A stretch of 64,000 bases of DNA from Anolis carolinensis (lineage: Eukaryota). A program made the translations under genes and the position numbers. Under the pieces are notes generated by a model that had not been told where the DNA came from, ran no database searches, and worked only from the letters and a program-made list of their open reading frames with translations. Positions within the stretch are counted from its first letter, which is position 1, and each line of letters opens with the position of its first letter. The DNA lies in contig NC_085842.1 of assembly GCF_035594765.1 (NCBI RefSeq), positions 141,435,036-141,499,035 of the forward strand. The letters are read 5' to 3'. Positions 11,826-61,910 of the stretch are shown in pieces.

Positions 11826-11978
11826 NNNNNNNNNNNNNNNNNNNNNNNNNNNNNNNNNNNNNNNNNNNNNNNNNNNNNNNNNNNNNNNNNNNNNNNNNNN
11901 NNNNNNNNNNNNNNNNNNNNNNNNNNNNNNNNNNNNNNNNNNNNNNNNNNNNNNNNNNNNNNNNNNNNNNNNNNNNNN
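11826..11978. other. Assembly gap (153 N)
   Basis: Run of N in the sequence. Confidence 1.
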
Positions 11979-19659: not shown

Positions 19660-20270
19660 TCTCCCTCGCCCCGCGTGCACCTTTTCTGCTGCCGCTGCCG
19701 CCGAAGAAGGAGCGCGCAGGGCGAGCGAGGAGGCAGGGAAAGTGAGTGGCTTTCTCGCCTCGCTCGCCCCGCACGCTCCTTTCCCGCCGCTGCTGTCGAG
19801 GAAGGAGTGCACGGGGCGAGCATGGAGAGAAAGCCACTCACCTTCCCTGCCTCCTCGCTCGCCCCGCGCGCTCCTTTCCCGCCGCTGCCGCCGAAGAAGG
19901 AGCGCGCAGGGCGAGCGAGGAGGCAGGGAAGGTGAGTGGCTTTCTCGCCTCGCTCGCCCCGCGCGCTCCTTTCCCGCCGCTGCCGCCGAAGAAGGAGCGC
20001 GCAGGGCGAGCGAGGAGGCAGGGAAGGTGAGTGGCTTTCTCGCCTCGCTCGCCCCGCGCGCTCCTTTCCTACCGCCGCTGTCGAGGAAGGAGTGCACGGG
20101 GCAAGGAGAGAAAGCCACTCGCCTTCCCTGCCTCCTCGCTCGCCCTGCGCGCTCCTTTCCCGCTGCCGCTGTTGCCAAGGAACATAAGCACTGGGCAAAC
20201 AAGAAGAGAAAGGCACTCACCTTTCCTGCCTCCTTGCCCGCCCCGTGCGCTCTTTTCCAGCCACCGCTGC
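19660..20270. repeat. GC-rich ~95-bp minisatellite with internally palindromic units
   Basis: tttctcgcctcgctcgcccc recurs at 19751, 19941 and 20036; each unit contains ctcgctcgccccgcgcgctcctt...aaggagcgcgcagggcgagcgag. Confidence 0.85.
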
Positions 20271-20559
20271 CACAGAGGAACTTAAGACCTTGCTTGAGGT
20301 ACCACATTAAATGTACATTGGGGAAAATGGCACACTTCGTTTTGTATTGCACAGAATGTATCCAGTGGCAGTTTCCAAAATGAATACAGAGGCACATCTT
20401 ATAGAAATAGGTTAACTGTGTTAGTAGGTGGTTGAATTATGTTGGTCAGGGATGCTTTGATTGTTTTGGTGCACAAAGGCAGAAGGGGGTTGGATTAGAT
20501 GGCCCAAGGGGTCTTTTCCAACCATTTTAATTATGGTATTATTATTATTATTATTATTG

Positions 20560-46554: not shown

Positions 46555-46909
46555 TGGAACTTAGTCAGCCTTGGCCGCCTTAGTAGATGATTTCCAGAGA
46601 GAGCTCGACAGGGGGAGTATGGCTCTGTTGGTTCTCTTGGACCTCGCAGCAGTTTTTGATACCATAGACCAGGGGTCCCCAAACTTTTTAAACAGGGGGC
46701 CAGTTCACAATTCTTCGGACCATTGGAGGGCCGGACTATAGTTGGCCAACGAGCATAAATAATAATAATAACAACAATAATAATAATAACAGCAATAATA
46801 ATAATAAAGAGGGTTGGAAGAGACCCCTTGGGCCATTGAGTCCAATCCCCTTCTGCTTTTGTGTACTGAAAGCACAAGCAAAGCACCCCTGACAGATGGT
46901 CACCCAGCC

Positions 46910-46941
<32 letters not shown>

Positions 46942-47059
46942 AATAATAATAAATAGGGTTGGAAGAGACTCCTTGGGCCATTGAATCCAATCCCCTTCTG
47001 CCTTTGTGCATTGAAAACACAAGCAAAGCACCCTTGACAGATGGCCACCCAGCCTCAAT

Positions 47060-47112
<53 letters not shown>

Positions 47113-47230
47113 GGGTTGGAAGAGACTCCTTGGGCCATTGAGTCCAATCCCCTTCTGCCTTTGTGCACCGAAAACACAAGAAAAGCACCCTTGATGGCCA
47201 CCCAGCCTCAGATGGCCACCCAGCCTCAAT

Positions 47231-51007: not shown

Positions 51008-52864
51008 TCCCTGTACTTTGAGATCAGCTACTAAAAATCTATTTGAATTTTTTTGCTCCTTTATACACAAGGCTTGAGATGAAGGAAGTCCATATAAGGG
51101 TACTTTCAGTAAAAGGAATGCCAATTGTTAGTGTATTTTCAGGAGCATCTGTATTTTTAGTCACACCAAGCTTGATTCTACTCAGAAGGAACACATATTT
51201 GTTTTAGGCTTGCACTTTGTACTCCAACTTAGTGTGAAAAAACTTTCCTCTGTTTCTTGCTGGGTCTGCACTGGCCATTGAAGCAACCTTATTATTATAG
51301 CTGAAGTCTACTATGCCAGGGGAATGTTTGCACACAATGTCTCCCTTATTTCTCTTCCCATTTCTCTAATCAATGATAGAAACGGTTTAGTTTTCACAGC
51401 TTATCTGACACTACAGTGTCTACACAGAGATTAAACTCCTCTTTCCACATTTTCACGCCAGTTTTGAATTTGAAGCTTGCAGGTTCAATATGTCAAATGG
51501 ATCCAAGCCTTCTATTCTCTCTCTCACACTCACTCAACCCCCCCCCCCCTCTCATTCTCCCTTATCCCTACAAAGACAAGTTTCTTATTCTTCTACCACC
51601 ATGACTCGGCTTTGTGGGAGTGCATCTTACATTCTCTTAAGTGTTTTATAAGGCCTTTTCAGGTGGAAGCAGGGATGTAGAAATGGGTGGGGAAATGTCC
51701 TGATTAGGAACTGTCCTGGTTTAATACACAGTTTTAGTTAGCGTAACCCTCTCTTATCTTACTTTTCAGCATTTTAAAAAATATTCTATTTGCCTTCTCC
51801 CCATCTCATTTTTCCTCTTATTTCATTTGCTTCAAACCGTGCTAAAAGGTTTGAAGCAAAAGTAGTTCAGCTTAGTAAGAGTGAAAGGAGAAGACAGAGC
51901 AGAATCTTGCCCTTCCCTGTAGGCTATGACAGTCTCTTCTTTCCTATCTTTAGGAAACCATATTGTTGTTTTGTCACATGAGTCCCAGTTCTCATTTATG
52001 AAATGTTGTATAGTTTGTTTCTGGTGTGTTTTCATTAGGTTTCTTGGATGACAACACCTTAGTTGAAATAAGATGTTGGTTTTAAAATGTGCTTGCTGTT
52101 ACTAACATTTAAAATTTGTGTGTTGCTTGCCAAATGTTTAGTCTTTCCTTTAGCGTTGCATCTTGACCTTTTGCATGACAATAAGAATCATTCATGAATA
52201 CTCAAAAGACAATGAAAGATGTCTAAATATATCCTTGGGGCATATAATTAACTGACTTTCAGTAGAATTCCCCTTGCAGAATTGTGGGATCAGGACATTA
52301 AGTTGGGAGGCTGCTTTGAAACCCAGACCTTTCTGGCAAATTCTTCTCCTAACACCCTACAGTGCTTGACAACTTGACATTGAAGAAAACACTATCTGCT
52401 ACTGTAACTGTCTGATGCTGGCCGGCACTTGGTAAAGACACTGTGGACTGAACAGAAAGAATATGTTCCCTCCCTTTCTATCTTTTATTATGCATATATA
52501 GTATTAATGTACTGCATAATAAAATGTTGCAGCCTGTGCCAGACATGGCCAGAAGATAATCTGTGACAATAGAAAGAGATATTTGGATTTTTTTAAAACA
52601 AATTAAAAAAACCCCTACAGAAACAAAAACTGGAACTTCAAGGCAAAATAAGTTTTTCTCAGCCTGGCTGTTGAAGATTCCTTTAACTGGACAGTACCTA
52701 TCAGCCTGTGTATACAATGCACATGGTACATAATAACCTATGCTCCACCTCAGCATCCCACATTTATGCCTCACCAGAGAAGCTCAAAGATGGAATCTAC
52801 AGGGGTTTTTTTCTACAGCAGATATCTTCTTCCACTGATATTTTTCACATGACCTGGGGGTGTG

Positions 52865-53580
52865 TGTTCCGTCCCCCAGGACGATGGTTTGCCTTACCTA
52901 TTGGTCGTTTGTTTGTTTTCCCTCCTTTGCATTCTGTTTCAGCCTCTGGCTGCAAAAGCCTAGGAAAAGTGACTTGGAATCTGCAAGAGCTGGCTGCAGT
53001 TTTCTTTGCAGTGATTGGTCAAAGAATGCAACATCTTAGGACCGCCCTTTTTACCAGGGTCTAGTCTCCATTTTGGAGCTTCATTCTGGCTATAGTCTTA
53101 CAACGTGCTGGAGCTGTGCAAGGCTAACTGGGACAAATCATCCTCAAAACCAGGCCAATCTAAGCCTATCCAAATTAGATAAGTATTGAATTATATTGAT
53201 CTGGAATAGGAACTCTAGTTAGAGGAGCAGGGTTATTCTGTCGCTTCTAGAACTAATCTTTGCTGTAAAGATAGGGAAGGAAAGAGTTTCTCCTTCTAAT
53301 ATAGGCAGCGTGATTAGGGTATAGTGGTTTTATAATCACCTTTGCTTTCTGGAACCAGGGATAATTCTGTACCTAAAACCTATAGAAATTTGTTTCATTT
53401 TCTGCAACTTTAAGATCTGTGCCAGGTTTACAACCTTGTATGAATAAACATCCTTTTTTGAAGTTATCCAGACTCAGTCGTTCAATATCTATAGGACAGC
53501 TTATAGGGATTTGCAGTTCGCCCGGATAAAGGACAGCACGTTTCAGTTTTATAGTTTTTTATTGTCCGGCGGACGGCACA
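52865..53580 (+). repeat. 5' LTR
   Basis: TGTTCCGTCC...GGACGGCACA with inverted termini; contains AATAAA (~53443); identical by eye to 58830-59545. Confidence 0.97.
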
Positions 53581-54007
53581 GTTTTGAGGTAGATCAGCGG
53601 TTTTTCCGCTTGAGCTAGCTTGCACGGCTTATAGTTTTTTATAGTTTAGGAAGTTTAGTTTAGGCCGCGGCTTTTCCGCCTGAGCTCAGTCTGCATACCT
53701 AAAGACTCAACCAGCGTCTGAGGCAGTGGAGCCCGCTCTCAGACCTGAAGGAGTCAAATAGTGGGGCTCTATTTCCTTGCTATTTGGCTCGCGTGTGCGC
53801 ACGTGGCCCAGTGGCTTTCTGGGTTTGCACAGGCTGTGCAGTTCCCAGCAACGTCCAGGGCTCCCTCGGCGGTAGACCTCGAGCCGCGGAGCACCAGCGA
53901 CAGTTCTTTGGCTGGCTCTGAGGCGTGAAGCCCACCAGAACCAGGCTAGAACCTGGACAGGCCTGGCAACGCTGCTGCGAGTTCGGCCGGAGCACTCGGC
54001 CGGCTTC

Positions 54008-54402
54008 GACCTGCCTCATGGTCCGGCGGTGGTGACCTGCCTCATCGTCCTGCGGTGGTGACCTGCCTCATGGTCCGGCGGTGGTGACCTGCCTCATCGT
54101 CCTGCGGTGGTGACCTGCCTCATCGTCCTGCGGTGGTGACCTGCCTCATCGTCCTGCGGTGGTGACCTGCTTCATCGTCCTGCGGTGGTGACCTGCCTCA
54201 TTGTCCGGCGGTGGTGACCTGCCTCATCGTCCTGCGGTGGTGACCTGCTTCATTGACCTGCGGCGGTGACCTGTCTCATCATCCTGCGGTGGTGACCTGC
54301 CTCATCGTCCTGCGGTGGTGACCTGCTTCATCGTCCTGCGGTGGTGACCTGCCTCATCGTCCTGCGGTGGTGACCTGTTTCATCGACCTGCGGTGGTGAC
54401 CT
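54008..54402 (+). repeat. 26-bp minisatellite, 15 copies, in the BEL leader
   Basis: Unit gacctgcctcatcgtcctgcggtggt, with starts every 26 nt from 54008 to 54398. Confidence 0.95.
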
Positions 54403-54782
54403 CCCTTCACAGCGGGGAGGAGGCGTCTTTTCTCTCCTCCTTTCCAAAGCCAGCCTCGGTGCTCCTTCGGCGGCAGGCCTCGAGCCGCAGAGCGCGAGGT
54501 GCTTGAAAATTTGGCGAAGTCGCCATTTTGGCAGTTTACGTCACTCGGGCAAGGGAGGTATCAAGTGGCAAGTTGCTGTCAGTTGGCATTTTGCAGCTTG
54601 CCCACTAAAATCTGGCGCCAAAGGTCACTATCTTTGTAAAGTATAGTTACTTAGTGATATATATTGCTATGGTTAAGTGTTGTGCATTGTATTATATATT
54701 GCATTTGCTTTTATTGTAAATTTACTTGCTGGTATGTTGTATTTGCTTTTGTTGTAAATTTACTTGCTATTAAGAATACATA

Positions 54783-57700
54783 ATGTCTATGCAATTTCAA
54801 GATGATACAGATGGTATACCTCCTTCTGAGGCTGAAAGTAGGAATGAAAGGCCCCAAAGGATAAAGCACCCTTCAGCCAAGATGCTAGCCCATCTAATAG
54901 ATGAAAAGGAGCTCCTCCATGTGAGGTTAGGTTCGGCATGGGAGCGAATTGTAACATTGATGGGCAGAATTGAGAGCTTGGGTATTACAAGGGTGCCATC
55001 CATATTACAGACCGACCTTGAAGAGACCTTCGGTCTCTGGAGGGGTTTGGTGTCTAAGATAGTCCAGGTCCTCGAGCGCATTAACGCCAAGGATTCAGAG
55101 TTAGAAATAGTGAGTGTCTTAGCTGACACTAATGAGAAAGAAAATAAGGTGAGGGCAATTCTAGATGCCTTGGAATTTAGTTCTCCACCTGTTAATCTAA
55201 GGTCTGAGCCAAAAGGAAATCAGTCTTCCTTATGCAGCCATGAGACCAATCTTTTAAAATCACCTGCTGTGGCACTTAGTCTTAAGTCCAACCGCTCTAG
55301 CCAGGTATCTAAGCTAAGGGAGTGTGCATCATCTAAACATAGCCACTCTAGCAAGTCTTCTGCTGCTGGGAGTGCCATCTCTTCCCTAGCTGCCTTGCAC
55401 ATTAGGGAGGCTGCACGTCTGGAGCTAAAGAGCAAGGTAGCAGGGGCGGAAGCTGATGCTAAGGCAGCTGATCTCACCCTTCCCTTTAAAGAAGAAGAGC
55501 AACGAATGCAAATAGAACAGGCCCGTAGACAAAGCGAAATGCAAATGGAACAGGCCCAAAGGCAAGGTGAAATAGAAATGCTTAGAATAAGGATGGACGC
55601 TACTGCCAAAAAGGTAAGGGCTGAGACTTTGGCCAAGGCCCTAATTGAGCCACTCACAGAAGAAAATGTAAGTCAGTTGCCGAAGCAGGACCCTTCTTCC
55701 AAGGTGCTTGTGCATCTTAATAGCTTAAACAGCCAGTTTTCGGATGAGGAACAGGAAGACTTCTCTCCTTACCCAGAGCAGGGCCCCAAAGTCACTTTTG
55801 AGTTTCCTGCAGAGCAGAGCGTCATAGCGGGGAGCTCACCCTTGCCCGAGCTACCTGTGCCTCCTGCTAAATCCCTAGGTCAGTCAATCAGGGCCTCAAG
55901 GCCAAGTGCTAGTTGGCCCTTACAGACAGCTGCACAGGGAGCCACCGATTCGTCAGTGGTCGATGTCATCCCTCCAAGAGGCCAAAGGTTGACGCAAGGT
56001 GCACGGTGGGAGTCCACTCCACAACAGCAAACTCCTCAATTGTTCCCTTCGACGCCAGAGTCCCAGCTTGTCTCCATCATCAGAAGCCCCAGAAGAGATC
56101 TTAAGGACAAGGGTGTCGAAAAGTTTTCGGACAAGCCTGAGGAATTTCTTCTCTGGAAGGCCACCTTCCAGAGAGCAATCAGAGACTTAAAGTTATTGCC
56201 TGAGGAAGAACTGACTCTTCTGGCTGCATGGTTGGGCCCAGCCTCATCCTCACAAGTTAAGAAGATCTACGCAGCCCACGTAGCCGATCCCGACAAAGCC
56301 CTGGAAAAGGCCTGGGCCAGGTTGCAGCAGAGGTATGGGGCCAGCACAGAGATTGAAGCATCTCTTATGGACAAGCTCCAAAGGTTCCCAGCTTTGAAAC
56401 TCAAAGACTTCAAACTCTTGTGGGACCTCAGCGATCTCCTTACGGAATTAGAGTCGGCCAAGGAGAATCCAGAACTGCCCGGTTTGAAGTGCCTCGATCA
56501 GCACCTGTCCCAGAGGCAGATCTTGACCAAGCTGCCCTTCACTTTGCAAGAACGCTGGGGACAGGAGGTCTTCAACTACAAGGAGGCCCACTCCCAGGCA
56601 TACCCTCCATTTTCTCATTTGGTCCAGTTCATCACCAGGGCGGCCAGAGAAAGGAATGATCCGCAGACGGGCCTCCCCACCTTATACCAAGGGACCCAGC
56701 CAGAGAAGGCACCTAAAGTGGACAAGAAACCATCTAGAGAGGCCAATAGACCTGTCAGCGTAAAGGCAGTCGAAACTCAACTCAAGACTGACGAACCCAG
56801 GTCGGAGGTAAAAGAGTTGCTTTGCCCTATTCACCAAAAGCCTCACAGCTTGGCCAACTGCAGGGAGTTTAGTAGAAAGACATACAAAGAAAGGCAACAG
56901 CTAGTTCAAAAGCAGGGAATCTGCTTTAGATGCTGTGGAGCAACTCCACACTTTGCATCCAACTGCAAAGAAAACATCAAGTGTGAGAAATGCAACAGCC
57001 TCAAGCATTGCACCGCAATGCACAACTCCAATATCATCTCCCACCCCAAAGAGAACGCTTCACCAAAAGAAAAGTCAGCAGTCGAAGACACCGACAAGCC
57101 AGCCGCACCAGAGATGCAGGTGGAAGTTTCAGCAGTCGCCTGTACAGAGCTGTGTTCTGACTCGCACCAGTACAGAGTTTGTCATCCTATCTGCCTAGCG
57201 GATGTATATCCAGCCAAGAGCCCTTGGCTTAGAAAGAGACTCTATGTGGCCCTGGATTCACAGAGCGACGCCTCCCTGGCTACTCCAGAGTTCTTCCGCA
57301 TGTTTGACCTTAAAACCAAGATGGTCGACTACACTATGACTACGTGTGCAGGAAAAAAGAAGTTGCAGGGTCGCATAGCATCTGGCTTCGTTGTCTCCTC
57401 TTGCGACCAGAAGAGACAGTTCAAGTTGCCAGACCTGATTGAGTGTTCCTCTATTCCCCGGAACAAAAGGCAGATTGTCACTAGAGAAGTTGTGGAGGCT
57501 CATCCACATTTGCGACGGTTAAAGAATGCTATACCAGCCTTTCGGCCAGATGTGGACATTGCCCTTTTGCTTGGCTCGGACTGCCCGAGCTTGTTCTGTG
57601 TGAACGACCAAGTTAAAGGACCTCCAGGTGCACCTATCGCACAACAATTGCCATTAGGCTGGACAGTCATAGGCCCAGTGTGCATAAACAAGATGCACCC

Positions 57701-58637
57701 ACCATCGTCGTTGGACTCCAATCAAGCACAGGTGCTTAAAGGTGGACGTCCTACACTTGTGCGCAGTTGCCTAAGTCACATCTCAGTCTACTGCCAAGGA
57801 ATAACTCCAGAGTATTCCTCCACCTTCAAAGTCTCTGAGAGAGACGAAGCCATAGCGCTCTTGAAAGATGAGCAAAGGTTCTTGGACAGTATGAATGCTC
57901 AAGTCTCACGAAGTACAGAGGGAAATTGGGTAGCTCCTTTGCCCTTTAAGTCAGATAAGCCCACTTCGCCAAACAATAGACACATGGCAGGGAAAAGACT
58001 CTGGTCCCTAAAGAAAAGAATCCATCATCAGGGTAGAACTCTAACTGAGGCAGCCCTTAGAAACGAAGGTCTGTGGGTAGTTAATGCCAAAAGGTTGGTC
58101 AACAGTTGTATTTTCAAATGTGTTAAATGCAGGTGCCTTAGGCGAAACTGTCAAAATCGGTTAATAGCAGAACTACCTCAGGATAGGACTTTGACAGACC
58201 CACCCTTTTCCCACGTGGGAATTAATGTGTTTGGTCCTTGGGAAATTGTTACCAGAAAAACCAGGGGTGGTGTTGTAAATAATAAAAGATGGGCGGTTTT
58301 GTTTACTTGTTTGTCAAAACGAACTGTCTATATTGAGGATGTAGAGGGAATGGACACTTCATCATTTTTAAATGCATTGAAAAGGTTCATAGCCCTCAGA
58401 GGGCCAATTAAGTCAATTCGATCGGACTGTGGCACCAATTTTGCATGTGCAGACCTTAGCCAACCACTTCTGGAAGAGGTGGAAGGCCGAATACTTAAGC
58501 CAGCTTTCAACCAGAAGACTCTGGCAAACCCCAGAGGACAATTTCAAGGTGGGAAACCTTGTGTTGCTAAAGGACAAAGACTTGCCCCGCTATGCCTGGC
58601 CTATGGGCATTACACTAAAGACCTTTCCTTGCCCTGA
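54783..58637 (+). CDS. BEL/Pao Gag-protease polyprotein fused to a defective integrase remnant (1284 aa)
   Basis: Coiled-coil N-terminus; capsid-like region EKFSDKPEEFLLWKATF; knuckles CPIHQKPHSLANC, CFRCCGATPHFASNC and CEKCNSLKHCTAMH; protease YVALDSQSDAS...IALLLGSD...PLGW; then HHQG...CVKC and SDCGTNF. No YVDD-type RT motif. Confidence 0.93.
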   Translation: MSMQFQDDTDGIPPSEAESRNERPQRIKHPSAKMLAHLIDEKELLHVRLGSAWERIVTLMGRIESLGITRVPSILQTDLEETFGLWRGLVSKIVQVLERINAKDSELEIVSVLADTNEKENKVRAILDALEFSSPPVNLRSEPKGNQSSLCSHETNLLKSPAVALSLKSNRSSQVSKLRECASSKHSHSSKSSAAGSAISSLAALHIREAARLELKSKVAGAEADAKAADLTLPFKEEEQRMQIEQARRQSEMQMEQAQRQGEIEMLRIRMDATAKKVRAETLAKALIEPLTEENVSQLPKQDPSSKVLVHLNSLNSQFSDEEQEDFSPYPEQGPKVTFEFPAEQSVIAGSSPLPELPVPPAKSLGQSIRASRPSASWPLQTAAQGATDSSVVDVIPPRGQRLTQGARWESTPQQQTPQLFPSTPESQLVSIIRSPRRDLKDKGVEKFSDKPEEFLLWKATFQRAIRDLKLLPEEELTLLAAWLGPASSSQVKKIYAAHVADPDKALEKAWARLQQRYGASTEIEASLMDKLQRFPALKLKDFKLLWDLSDLLTELESAKENPELPGLKCLDQHLSQRQILTKLPFTLQERWGQEVFNYKEAHSQAYPPFSHLVQFITRAARERNDPQTGLPTLYQGTQPEKAPKVDKKPSREANRPVSVKAVETQLKTDEPRSEVKELLCPIHQKPHSLANCREFSRKTYKERQQLVQKQGICFRCCGATPHFASNCKENIKCEKCNSLKHCTAMHNSNIISHPKENASPKEKSAVEDTDKPAAPEMQVEVSAVACTELCSDSHQYRVCHPICLADVYPAKSPWLRKRLYVALDSQSDASLATPEFFRMFDLKTKMVDYTMTTCAGKKKLQGRIASGFVVSSCDQKRQFKLPDLIECSSIPRNKRQIVTREVVEAHPHLRRLKNAIPAFRPDVDIALLLGSDCPSLFCVNDQVKGPPGAPIAQQLPLGWTVIGPVCINKMHPPSSLDSNQAQVLKGGRPTLVRSCLSHISVYCQGITPEYSSTFKVSERDEAIALLKDEQRFLDSMNAQVSRSTEGNWVAPLPFKSDKPTSPNNRHMAGKRLWSLKKRIHHQGRTLTEAALRNEGLWVVNAKRLVNSCIFKCVKCRCLRRNCQNRLIAELPQDRTLTDPPFSHVGINVFGPWEIVTRKTRGGVVNNKRWAVLFTCLSKRTVYIEDVEGMDTSSFLNALKRFIALRGPIKSIRSDCGTNFACADLSQPLLEEVEGRILKPAFNQKTLANPRGQFQGGKPCVAKGQRLAPLCLAYGHYTKDLSLP

Positions 58638-58740
58638 CGGTAAGGTTAGAAAAGTTCAAGTAAAGACTCATAGTAAGGACAAAATGTCTGTCCTGGACAG
58701 ACCAATTAGTGACCTCGTGTTGCTTATTGGAGATGTTTAA
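58443..58740 (+). pseudogene. Out-of-frame C-terminal domain of the BEL integrase (DUF5641-like)
   Basis: VQTLANHFWKRWKAEYL...VGNLVLLKD...WPMG...DGKVRKVQVKT...RPISDLVLL, in a different frame from the main ORF. Confidence 0.85.
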
Positions 58741-58819
58741 AGTTTTATACTGTTGTATTGTTGTGTATACAAAGGTGTTTGTATGTTTTTGATTGGTAAA
58801 TTCCCACATCCTGGGAATT

Positions 58820-58829
58820 TAGCGGGGAG
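58820..58829 (+). promoter_or_regulatory. Polypurine tract
   Basis: agcggggag directly abuts the TG of the 3' LTR. Confidence 0.8.
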
Positions 58830-59545
58830 TGTTCCGTCCCCCAGGACGATGGTTTGCCTTACCTATTGGTCGTTTGTTTGTTTTCCCTCCTTTGCATTCT
58901 GTTTCAGCCTCTGGCTGCAAAAGCCTAGGAAAAGTGACTTGGAATCTGCAAGAGCTGGCTGCAGTTTTCTTTGCAGTGATTGGTCAAAGAATGCAACATC
59001 TTAGGACCGCCCTTTTTACCAGGGTCTAGTCTCCATTTTGGAGCTTCATTCTGGCTATAGTCTTACAACGTGCTGGAGCTGTGCAAGGCTAACTGGGACA
59101 AATCATCCTCAAAACCAGGCCAATCTAAGCCTATCCAAATTAGATAAGTATTGAATTATATTGATCTGGAATAGGAACTCTAGTTAGAGGAGCAGGGTTA
59201 TTCTGTCGCTTCTAGAACTAATCTTTGCTGTAAAGATAGGGAAGGAAAGAGTTTCTCCTTCTAATATAGGCAGCGTGATTAGGGTATAGTGGTTTTATAA
59301 TCACCTTTGCTTTCTGGAACCAGGGATAATTCTGTACCTAAAACCTATAGAAATTTGTTTCATTTTCTGCAACTTTAAGATCTGTGCCAGGTTTACAACC
59401 TTGTATGAATAAACATCCTTTTTTGAAGTTATCCAGACTCAGTCGTTCAATATCTATAGGACAGCTTATAGGGATTTGCAGTTCGCCCGGATAAAGGACA
59501 GCACGTTTCAGTTTTATAGTTTTTTATTGTCCGGCGGACGGCACA
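58830..59545 (+). repeat. 3' LTR
   Basis: 716 bp, same sequence as the 5' LTR, followed by the TSD gtgtg. Confidence 0.97.
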
Positions 59546-61910
59546 GTGTGAGCAAAACATGTACTTTGTGAGTCCCAGTCCATGGCACCTTTAGGCAAGG
59601 CAGAATCCTGCATGAATACATCTCCAGCATCTTAGGCAAAAAATCTTTCTTAATCTGACTACTGAAGATCCTTTCACTGCAGAGTACCTATCAGCGTCTA
59701 TCTCTGCCATGAGCTCCACCCCATCATTTTCTTCAACCACACCCCTGTTTTCCATACAATCCTTTTCCTTATCCCAAGTCTTCTTCTTTAGATAGTAGGC
59801 TTTCTTTCTTTTAGGCAGCAGAACAGTCGACAACCACTTCAGATATAAAATTTCAGCAGATTGACTGTGTGAGAGAGACAACTACAGTATCAAGGGAAGG
59901 GGAGGGCAATCCTCCAGATTAATTATGGCACTGCGAATGTGAAAAATAAATTCCCCCAAAAGAGACATTTTTCAGGAGATCCGGTGATGGACATACTCTT
60001 GAGGTTGAGTTAGAGCTTCCTAGTACCTCATTTAATTAACTCAATCTGACTTTTATAGGGCTTTATGTTATGTGTTTCCTTGTTCAGTAAACAAACAGCA
60101 GAAAATTAAAACAGGGCAGCTGCCAGCGAACAGTAAATTTAATTGAAAAATAATGAATTGCCATGGGGTGCCACCAGGGGTTTTGTCAAGATAAAGTTAT
60201 TTATCCTGGAAAGCTTCCACACGCATTTGTCAGTACTTGATATATACAGAAGTAAAAGGAGAGAAGCAAGCTGTGAGACATGCCGGGGCTGGATGCTGAT
60301 GGCATAGCCTTCTAAGCTCTGCTACTGAACAGCTTCCATTTATTTCCATGGCTCTGGGACTAAGCAACAGTTCTTTGAGAGTATTGCTGAAAGTTGTGCA
60401 ACTAGGCAGCAGTGCTTCCTGGATGGCTCCCTAACTCTCAGTCCTCTGTAAGAGCTGTGCAAGGCAAAGGCAGCCACAGCTAAGCTCTAAAGTGCAAGTT
60501 CATGCCGCTCCAGTAGGGTGGGACTAGGAATGGGACATGTTCCTTTCAGTCACTTTTGGACTGCATTCAACTAATCTTGCAAATGTCTCAACCTGTATTT
60601 CAATTGTGTTGGGAATACCATCACCCATTCCTGACAATGATTGAAAAGGAGGCAAGAAAACATGAGGCATGATAATACATTTATCTTTTCTCCAAACAAA
60701 TCAAAATGCAGCTTCAAGGGGCAGCAGCAGTGTTCACTCTCTCTGTGTCTGGAGAGAAGGCACATGGGCAACATTCAGCTGTAATTCTGCAGCTGAGAAA
60801 AGAGAGCTGGCATCACCTGCTTGGATCTCTAGGAATTTCTTGCAGGAGGTCCCTAGATATGGGGACCCTGGCTTTTTCTGGCCCTTGGAGTGCATGCTCC
60901 AGCCTTCTGGATGAGGTGGGAATGTCCTCAAATGTCTTCAAAAGGGCAAACTATATATAACTTCAGGTTATATGAGTGTATCTCACCAATAAAATTACTG
61001 TTCATGATAGCTTATTGGACTGTGATTGACTGAGGTTGCTAAAGAAACTAATGCACAGTGAATTCTGATGTCAATTTGAGCTGGACTAATGCACAGAGTG
61101 CAATTTCATTATTCATTGGCTTTTGTACTTCCTGAATGTTTAAAAACACACATTTTGGGAGAAAACACATCTTTAAAAATAATACAGCTTTAAAAATAAT
61201 TTGTGCACTTTTAATGCTACCTGAAGAGAAAATTTGAAATAGGGTGGAATGGATTGATATGTAAAACACACATAGAAGTGACCAAGATGAGAAATAGACT
61301 CATTCACTTATGCTCTTAAAATGGGGTGATCATTTCAGTCTCCAGATGCCTTGGGTTATCAACTCCACAGTGCTGCAGATCACATATGAGAGTTGTGGTG
61401 CCAAAGATTAGGAGGCTCAGAAGTTTTTCCCTCATGGCTTAAGAACGGCAACTGTGTACCAAAAACCACACCTGTGGGTGCCATAGTGTCGTTGCTGTGT
61501 CTGCATGAATTGGGCCTTATATTTCCCTTTGTAACTTGCTTTTGCTTGTTGGCTACAAAGTCTTTCCAGCTATGCGCTTAAAGCAAAAATTCCTAAGTAT
61601 TTTGCAGAATAAGCAAGACTTTCACTATAGAAACTTGAATATTTCCACTGTGGTACTGGCAGGGATTTTGTGCCTGTTTTCCATTTTGCTTTTATATTTA
61701 GCATTTTATAAAATGATATACACTTCTCCTTTAATTGGAGATGAGGTATCTGCTACTTAATTCAATCACTTGTTAATATGATCAACACTACTTGGGATTT
61801 TATTCCTCCTTCTGTCTTTCTCTTCCTCTTTATCTTATAAAAAGAGCAGCCAGGAACTCTGTAAGATATGAGTTTATCTCATTAATGATTTCTGCATGCA
61901 CTTAACAGGA

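Follow-up and report, generated by a model that had tools for sequence, protein, structure and literature searches.

How can an element that encodes no reverse transcriptase (RT) have inserted so recently that its two ends are still identical? This question is raised by a stretch of 64,000 nucleotides of the Anolis carolinensis genome (contig NC_085842.1 of assembly GCF_035594765.1, positions 141,435,036 to 141,499,035; hereafter the window), in which a long terminal repeat (LTR) retrotransposon of BEL/Pao type, 6,681 bp long, occupies positions 52865-59545 of the + strand. An earlier note, made from the letters of the window, had proposed that this copy belongs to a propagating non-autonomous lineage that makes its own Gag and protease (PR) and borrows the other enzymes in trans. 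On the evidence presented here, we consider it probable that the window element was inserted very recently and stems from a swarm of RT-less BEL/Pao elements of A. carolinensis, which lack the RT core and most of RNase H and are replicated in trans. Members of the family keep their LTRs, a polypurine tract and an open reading frame (ORF) for Gag, zinc knuckles and a PR of retropepsin fold; some sublineages also keep an intact integrase, and the sublineage of the window has additionally lost the catalytic half of it.

The ends of the element, which like all its parts lies on the + strand, were defined by comparing the window with itself. At an offset of 5,965 nt there were zero mismatches from 52864 to 53582, and trimming to TG...CA ends gave a 5' LTR at 52865-53580 and a 3' LTR at 58830-59545, both of 716 bp, which match at 716 of 716 positions. 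The LTRs are flanked by a perfect 5-bp target site duplication (TSD), GTGTG, at 52860-52864 and again at 59546-59550. The identity that the earlier note had judged by eye is therefore exact, and the insertion is very recent, as had been claimed; with 0 differences over the 716 nt of the LTR, and assuming a neutral rate of ~2e-9 per site per year, its age is at most roughly a million years. A putative polypurine tract, a purine-rich segment at 58818-58829 that adjoins the 3' LTR, is kept in 9 of the 9 copies that we read.

Between these ends a single ORF of 1,284 codons (54783-58637) runs through Gag, PR, a linker preceding the RT region, a truncated integrase and a frameshifted tail, and Gag-PR is free of stops and frameshifts, as described before. 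The only Pfam families recognised in this ORF were DUF1759, by a weak match at residues 448-555, and the rve integrase core, in part (residues 1164-1226); RT and RNase H (RVT_1, PF05380) were not among them. The pre-RT linker (57699-58019), which aligns with the segment before RT in full-length relatives, ends in ...RLWSLKKR and passes in frame straight into the integrase zinc-binding region, confirming the passage noticed earlier near 58019: the junction '...RLWSLKKR/IHHQG...' (the slash marks the join) falls at 58019/58020, between codons 1079 and 1080, with about 5 nt of microhomology (58015-58024). Compared with a full-length relative, about 679 residues have been lost at this point (a gap of 960 bp relative to the least-deleted paralog, L002, see below), among them the first His of the integrase HHCC motif (invariant H743 in our alignment A2).

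The integrase remnant (residues 1080-1220; 58020-58442) retains part of the HHCC zinc motif and the first half of the catalytic core, as judged from the partial rve match and from alignments A1 and A2. Codon 1148 (58224-58226) is AAT, encoding Asn, at the site of the first catalytic Asp, which is invariant in A2; Asp, not Asn, stands there in four aligned Anolis models, eight paralog loci and seven full-length relatives, and no other copy examined shares the change with the window. After SDCGTNF (end at 58442), a frameshifting deletion of about 386 nt, with its junction at 58441-58456 and a GGTGC-type microhomology, has removed the catalytic Glu region. Both integrase lesions thus agree with what had been reported from inspection. 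The DUF5641-like C-terminal tail (58429-58740), aligned with the intact tails of L002, L003, L007 and L008, is open but out of the frame of the main ORF. The HHCC motif, DDE triad and DUF5641 domain expected of a BEL/Pao integrase are complete in those four paralogs and incomplete in the window.

Is the defect peculiar to this copy? The nearest proteins to the window ORF in the protein collection are A. carolinensis models with 83-96% identity, followed by full-length BEL/Pao polyproteins with 34-37%. From four clusters at 90% identity we obtained 16 distinct A. carolinensis proteins and read the DNA of eight of them (L001-L008), so that the sample consists of annotated gene models and their loci. 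All eight, spread over five chromosome records and one other scaffold of GCA_035594765.1, are complete elements of 6,936-7,782 bp. Each has a perfect 5-bp TSD (AATAT, ATACA, GCCCC, AGAAT, AGTTG, GGCAG, GTTCA and TGGAC, in the order L001 to L008) and a nearly identical pair of LTRs of about 716 nt, with 0, 1, 0, 1, 0, 0, 0 and 2 mismatches. Taken together, the LTR pairs of the nine elements differ at 4 of ~6,450 compared positions, at most 0.3% per pair, and the window LTR is 95.7-98.7% identical to those of the eight paralogs. Direct LTRs with TG...CA termini and a short TSD, within the 4-6 bp that characterise BEL/Pao insertions, were thus found at all nine loci.

The eight paralogs have the same ATG and the same ORF architecture as the window, each with one uninterrupted ORF of 1,380-1,780 codons. 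No RT core or YxDD motif was present in the nine elements read or in the 16 annotated Anolis models. In L002 a stub of RT and the tail of RNase H are retained, and this copy therefore descends from a complete element. With RT and RNase H absent and LTRs and purine tract present, the elements have what defines a non-autonomous retrotransposon, a missing replication enzyme with the cis-acting ends kept. The lack of a working integrase, which the earlier note had made part of its description, does not extend to the family: L002, L003, L007 and L008 keep the catalytic D, D and E and an in-frame DUF5641 tail. The tail of L004 is frameshifted (2 nt missing in the alignment). In L006, a 1-bp deletion ~70 nt past the integrase deletion junction restores the DUF5641 frame, and the ORF ends at the normal stop.

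These loci also bear on a trivial explanation, in which the deletions are an assembly artefact, or the identity of the LTRs results from gene conversion or assembly collapse, and the insertion is neither young nor truly deleted. Young repeats are indeed hard to assemble, but eight further loci show this architecture too, each with an intact TSD and a near-identical pair of LTRs; moreover, the window ORF stays open across both junctions and no run of N lies in or near the element, the sole one in the window being at 11826-11978, far from it. We give this explanation almost no credence.

The way in which RT was lost differs from copy to copy. Five different junctions replace the RT region among the nine elements, each in frame and with short microhomology. 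In the least deleted, type A (L002, at ~9513), the pre-RT linker and roughly 70 N-terminal residues of RT are joined to the end of RNase H ('...GPDLLNN/YVYFHTDS...'), with a loss of ~357 residues that includes the RT core; type A' (L007) lacks 12 codons more. Type B ('VSRS/AEVK') is DNA-identical in five loci, L001, L003, L005, L006 and L008, all with different TSDs. Type C (L004) joins the left side of type B to the RNase H tail, and type D, from the pre-RT linker straight to integrase, was found in the window only. All five RT-region deletions keep the frame, for which the chance would be about (1/3)^5 if they were independent. The in-frame junctions suggest selection for read-through into the downstream part.

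The integrase deletion of the window is likewise shared. Its junction, linked base changes included, is identical in L005 and L006 and differs by one base in L001, and these four loci have four different TSDs. Within 150 nt of a shared junction the copies differ at up to 14 of 150 nt for the integrase deletion and up to 15 of 150 nt for type B (~9-10%). Because the junction flanks have diverged by up to 9-10%, and the LTR pairs by no more than 0.3%, the deletions must be far older than the individual insertions, and the deleted genomes have continued to be copied after the deletion. The proposal that a defective lineage propagates is thereby supported at the level of the family.

Could each deleted copy instead be an independent, dead-on-arrival product of an unseen autonomous master, with deletions recurring at the same microhomologies and no defective lineage propagating at all? 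Deletions by template switching are common in retroelement replication, all junctions do have short microhomology, and a helper must exist somewhere. However, identical junctions are linked to substitutions specific to a sublineage (for example, the window and the model P0001 both have SKRTVYIEDVEG), the integrase junction carries extra base changes common to four copies, and the sequence beside shared junctions differs between copies by up to 10%. In addition, 9 of 9 elements and 16 of 16 models are RT-less, with no full-length relative detected. Independent origins are therefore very improbable.

A more serious alternative concerns the window copy itself. The same defect at several loci with different TSDs was found for the integrase deletion and for type B, but not for the RT/RNase H junction of the window: SLKKR/IHHQG is absent from 8 of 8 paralog loci and from 16 of 16 Anolis models. 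Of the two junctions that were expected to recur in other copies, only the integrase one did so. The claim that the pol damage predates the latest transposition consequently holds for the integrase deletion, whereas the RT/RNase H junction and the Asp-to-Asn change, both private, possibly arose in the last cycle or after insertion. The window copy may thus be a dead end, whose RT/RNase H junction, and possibly its Asn, came from its own reverse-transcription event or later, from a parent that was already RT-less and integrase-dead; the family would propagate, the exact structure would not. The short microhomology at the window junction, like that of the others, fits this possibility, as does the mosaic make-up of the copy, with an L002-like N-terminal part (dS, the synonymous divergence, of 0.013) and L001/L005-like sequence further 3'. 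Against it, the sampling was confined to annotated copies, and that of the window has itself no annotation (an exact look-up of its ORF in the assembly collection returned no record), so that sisters with the same junction may exist. We give this outcome slightly less than an even chance, and it is compatible, at the family level, with trans-replication of an RT-less swarm.

The Gag core (residues 448-555; 56124-56447) is DUF1759-like (PF03564, E 7e-5); the match is weak, 23.3 bits against a curated cut-off of 25.4, and the region aligns with Gag of full-length relatives. It is followed by a Cys/His zinc-knuckle cluster of nucleocapsid type (residues 681-747; 56823-57023), in which Cys and His are invariant in alignments A1 and A2. 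For PR the situation was less direct. No Pfam protease family matched the window ORF or the full-length relatives, in which 'Peptidase_A17' (PF05380) maps after RT and not to the protease, and the PR alignment, used as a profile against PDB sequences, returned no match. The fold of residues 785-972 (57135-57698) was therefore predicted, with an alignment of this segment and 60 homologous segments (A3, 61 sequences). The AlphaFold2 model had a mean local confidence (pLDDT) of 88 and a predicted template-modelling score (pTM) of 0.83, and its top Foldseek matches in PDB were all retropepsins, namely the HIV-1, HTLV-1 and XMRV proteases and a Rickettsia retropepsin-like enzyme (probability 1.00, E about 2e-3, TM score up to 0.64 on the target). 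The motif L-D-S-Q-S in this region might be taken for a broken D-S-G active site. We rejected this reading: full-length relatives have D-[D/E]-Q-S, the clade form is D-[D/E/S]-Q-S and not D-S/T-G, and D, Q and S are invariant in 61 of 61 sequences. The segment is thus predicted to be a protease-like domain with a retropepsin fold and the conserved Asp of the clade, and the statement that PR is kept stands on the modelled fold, not on Pfam.

We measured selection on the retained part among the copies, as the earlier note had suggested. Nei-Gojobori (NG86) ratios of nonsynonymous to synonymous divergence (dN/dS) for Gag-PR were 0.14-0.22 in whole-region pairs, and 0.04-0.25 for PR alone. In the four copies that lack RT and have a dead integrase as well, the corresponding ratio of uncorrected proportions (pN/pS) was 0.13-0.28, with binomial P against neutrality of 7e-9 to 7e-18. 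Judged from these substitutions, Gag-PR is under purifying selection. The N-terminal integrase remnant of the same copies (58020-58442 in the window and the same region of L001, L005 and L006) also gave low values (pN/pS 0.15-0.40, P 2e-6 to 0.016), pointing either to a residual role of the remnant or to divergence imported by recombination.

Recombination is evident from how synonymous divergence changes along the ORF. Between the window and L002, dS is 0.013 in the N-terminal part, 0.28 in the Gag core and 0.79 in PR; between L008 and L002 it is 0.018 in the Gag core and 0.86 in PR. Because dS of one and the same pair swings in this way by region, the elements are mosaics of deeply diverged lineages. 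The window itself has an LTR nearest to L003/L004, an N-terminal part nearest to L002, Gag and PR nearest to L001/L005 and an integrase remnant nearest to L001.

Strong purifying selection and long open ORFs would also be expected of host-domesticated genes that have merely retained LTRs and are neither mobile nor parasitic, and NCBI does annotate copies as protein-coding genes. This is, however, hard to reconcile with many dispersed copies that have their own TSDs and near-identical LTRs, several of them inside the ranges of unrelated host genes, with a family that is mosaic and structurally variable, and with polymorphic BEL insertions reported in populations (PMC7561263). We regard domestication as scarcely believable.

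If the elements move without RT of their own, who supplies it? In BEL/Pao elements RT is produced as part of Gag-Pol, and the expected helper is for this reason a close relative with a co-assembling Gag. We searched the protein collection with the whole window ORF, with the pol part of L002 and with the segment from PR to the RT stub, considering candidates from ~200 to 3,100 residues. The best RT-bearing matches came from fish, frogs, ticks and molluscs, at 44-49% identity. The best lead, P0156 of Anolis sagrei, was rejected as a helper, being another RT-less element. Its locus (L009:3970-10161; GCA_037176765.1, CM073873.1) is a related LTR element with 61% identity in PR and the pre-RT region, direct repeats that are 99% identical and no integrase. 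In place of the RT core it has ~250 residues of the host protein PHF10 (E 1e-117 to the PHF10 chains of 7vdv and 7y8r), joined to an RNase H fragment at an 'FCD' microhomology; it looks like a retrotransposon with a captured piece of host complementary DNA.

Taken together, these data lead us to infer that the anole elements are mobilised in trans by helper proteins, and a course of events can be proposed. RNA would be transcribed from the 5' LTR and packaged in particles made at least partly of the element's own Gag, while RT and RNase H, and in the window sublineage integrase too, would be supplied by a co-expressed autonomous element whose Gag-Pol is able to co-assemble with the anole Gag. 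Variant RNAs would be co-packaged, and template switching by the borrowed RT would yield both mosaic genomes and internal deletions flanked by microhomology, the private RT/RNase H junction of the window being probably the latest of such deletions. Efficient copying would be restricted to copies that make working particle proteins, and this may be what the purifying selection on Gag-PR reflects. Co-packaging with template switching would also be the most economical reading of the mosaics.

Several observations weigh against this proposal. The helper is the first: no RT-bearing protein with more than ~50% identity was found among annotated or collected proteins, nor, in the same scope, an autonomous partner in the same genome with matching LTR, primer-binding site (PBS) and polypurine tract (the earlier note had proposed to look for a full-length helper with matching LTRs); the helper may be a low-copy or polymorphic element. 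The sampling of paralogs from annotated gene models is the second. In addition, nothing shows that the structure of the window copy, with its private RT/RNase H junction and Asp-to-Asn change, has been copied repeatedly, and part of the purifying selection could stem from unseen autonomous lineages through recombination. Finally, no canonical TGG-type PBS was recognised after the 5' LTR, at 53581-53610 or at the same site of L001-L008. The sequence following the LTR is kept in the nine copies except for a dinucleotide at positions 10-11, which is TA, AC, AT or TC depending on the copy. No tRNA gene that could be a source of the primer was found in the window, where a search for self-priming or a tRNA primer gave only a 9-nt complement of the post-LTR region. 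This site opens a leader of ~1.2 kb (53581-54782), within which a 26-bp tandem array of 15.3 copies extends over 54008-54406 (Tandem Repeats Finder, 91% matches); the array differs in length among the window and L001-L008 (alignment gaps of 26-208 nt).

The missing helper may also be read differently. The family could be a long-lived obligate parasite with no autonomous member left in the genome, borrowing RT and RNase H from a distinct retroelement family, with lineages separated by dS of up to about 1 and selection maintaining an in-frame Gag-PR-(integrase) polyprotein, even the remnant of a dead integrase. We consider this unlikely; were it true, the PHF10-bearing element of A. sagrei would show the same template switching capturing host genes as well.

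How does an RT-less swarm replicated in trans compare with known systems? Autonomous BEL/Pao elements (Belpaoviridae; the full-length fish, frog, tick and mollusc polyproteins P0005-P0012 and P0040) resemble the anole family in their TG...CA LTRs and 5-bp TSD. Their single ORF has the same order, with DUF1759-like Gag, zinc knuckles, PR, pre-RT linker, integrase zinc motif, DDE core and DUF5641 tail, at 34-49% identity. In contrast to them, every Anolis copy seen is without the RT core and RNase H (the region of Pfam 'Peptidase_A17'), and the window also lacks the first His of the zinc motif, the first catalytic Asp and the catalytic Glu region.

Plants, and a few mouse families of endogenous retroviruses (ERVs), provide well-described examples of non-autonomous LTR retrotransposons. 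The plant TR-GAG elements, documented in the literature, are like the anole family RT-less LTR elements with a capsid gene, presumed to be mobilised in trans; however, they have no pol domains and are of plant Ty1/Ty3 type, whereas the anole family is an animal BEL/Pao family with PR under strong selection and integrase whole or partial. The analogy to TR-GAG drawn in the earlier note therefore holds as a possible mode of working but not as membership: with PR, integrase sequence and a constrained ORF of 1,284 codons, the anole family is not a member of TR-GAG, LARD or TRIM. Other non-autonomous plant lineages, such as BARE-2 with BARE-1, Dasheng with RIRE2, and LARD/TRIM, amplify as parasites of a partner with matching LTR, PBS and polypurine tract; the coding capacity of BARE-2, Dasheng and LARD/TRIM is defective or absent, while in the anole elements purifying selection acts on a polyprotein of 1,284-1,780 codons. 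Among vertebrates, the mouse IAP I-delta-1 and ETn/MusD elements share with the anole family that they are internally deleted LTR elements; they owe a very high activity to proteins that full-length relatives supply, and the deleted form can be more numerous than its master. Unlike the anole family, they are betaretrovirus-like ERVs whose helpers are known; ETn is devoid of ORFs, and in I-delta-1 the deletion joins gag to pol but spares RT. A search of the literature yielded no paper on non-autonomous BEL/Pao elements of reptiles, in agreement with the earlier note, nor was any vertebrate BEL/Pao family found described in which all members lack RT, activity is recent and Gag-PR, often with integrase, is under selection.

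No further copies or solo LTRs of the element were found in the 64 kb of the window. Two tandem repeats unrelated to it, a GC-rich one with units of 95-98 bp at 19661-20286 and one of 145-bp units at 46776-47210, overlap spurious long ORFs on both strands.

Annotation of the family proved misleading in several respects. We rejected the Gnomon protein models as true products, as those of L002, L003, L004, L007 and L008 splice out in-frame pieces of continuous ORFs; because the genomic ORFs are continuous, and longer than the models, the introns are artefacts, and it was the DNA of L004 that revealed its own junction type. The models affected or otherwise problematic are P0145, P0015, P0002, P0003, P0004, P0149 and P0154. 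Host-gene names are carried by 2 of the 16 A. carolinensis models. One copy of the element is named 'teashirt homolog 2 isoform X1', and a UniRef model of ERC2 holds a piece of ~70 residues of the N-terminal region of the element. Five loci (L001, L004, L005, L007 and L008) lie inside annotated host-gene ranges, presumably in introns; the host products there have bHLH-PAS, Raftlin, PDEase_I and CN_hydrolase/Vanin domains, and one has no Pfam hit. For annotation, this means that at least 16 NCBI gene models are copies of a retroelement, some with false introns and two with the names of host genes.

In a population study of the green anole, BEL was one of the LTR clades in which private insertions are numerous, and this was read as recent activity (PMC7561263); polymorphic BEL insertions of 718 bp are listed there, a length that corresponds to the LTR of the anole family. 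The family described here may account for part of these private BEL insertions. It would allow one to ask, in a natural system, which proteins a retroelement has to make itself and which it can borrow, and would show how recombination among co-packaged defective genomes shapes a family.

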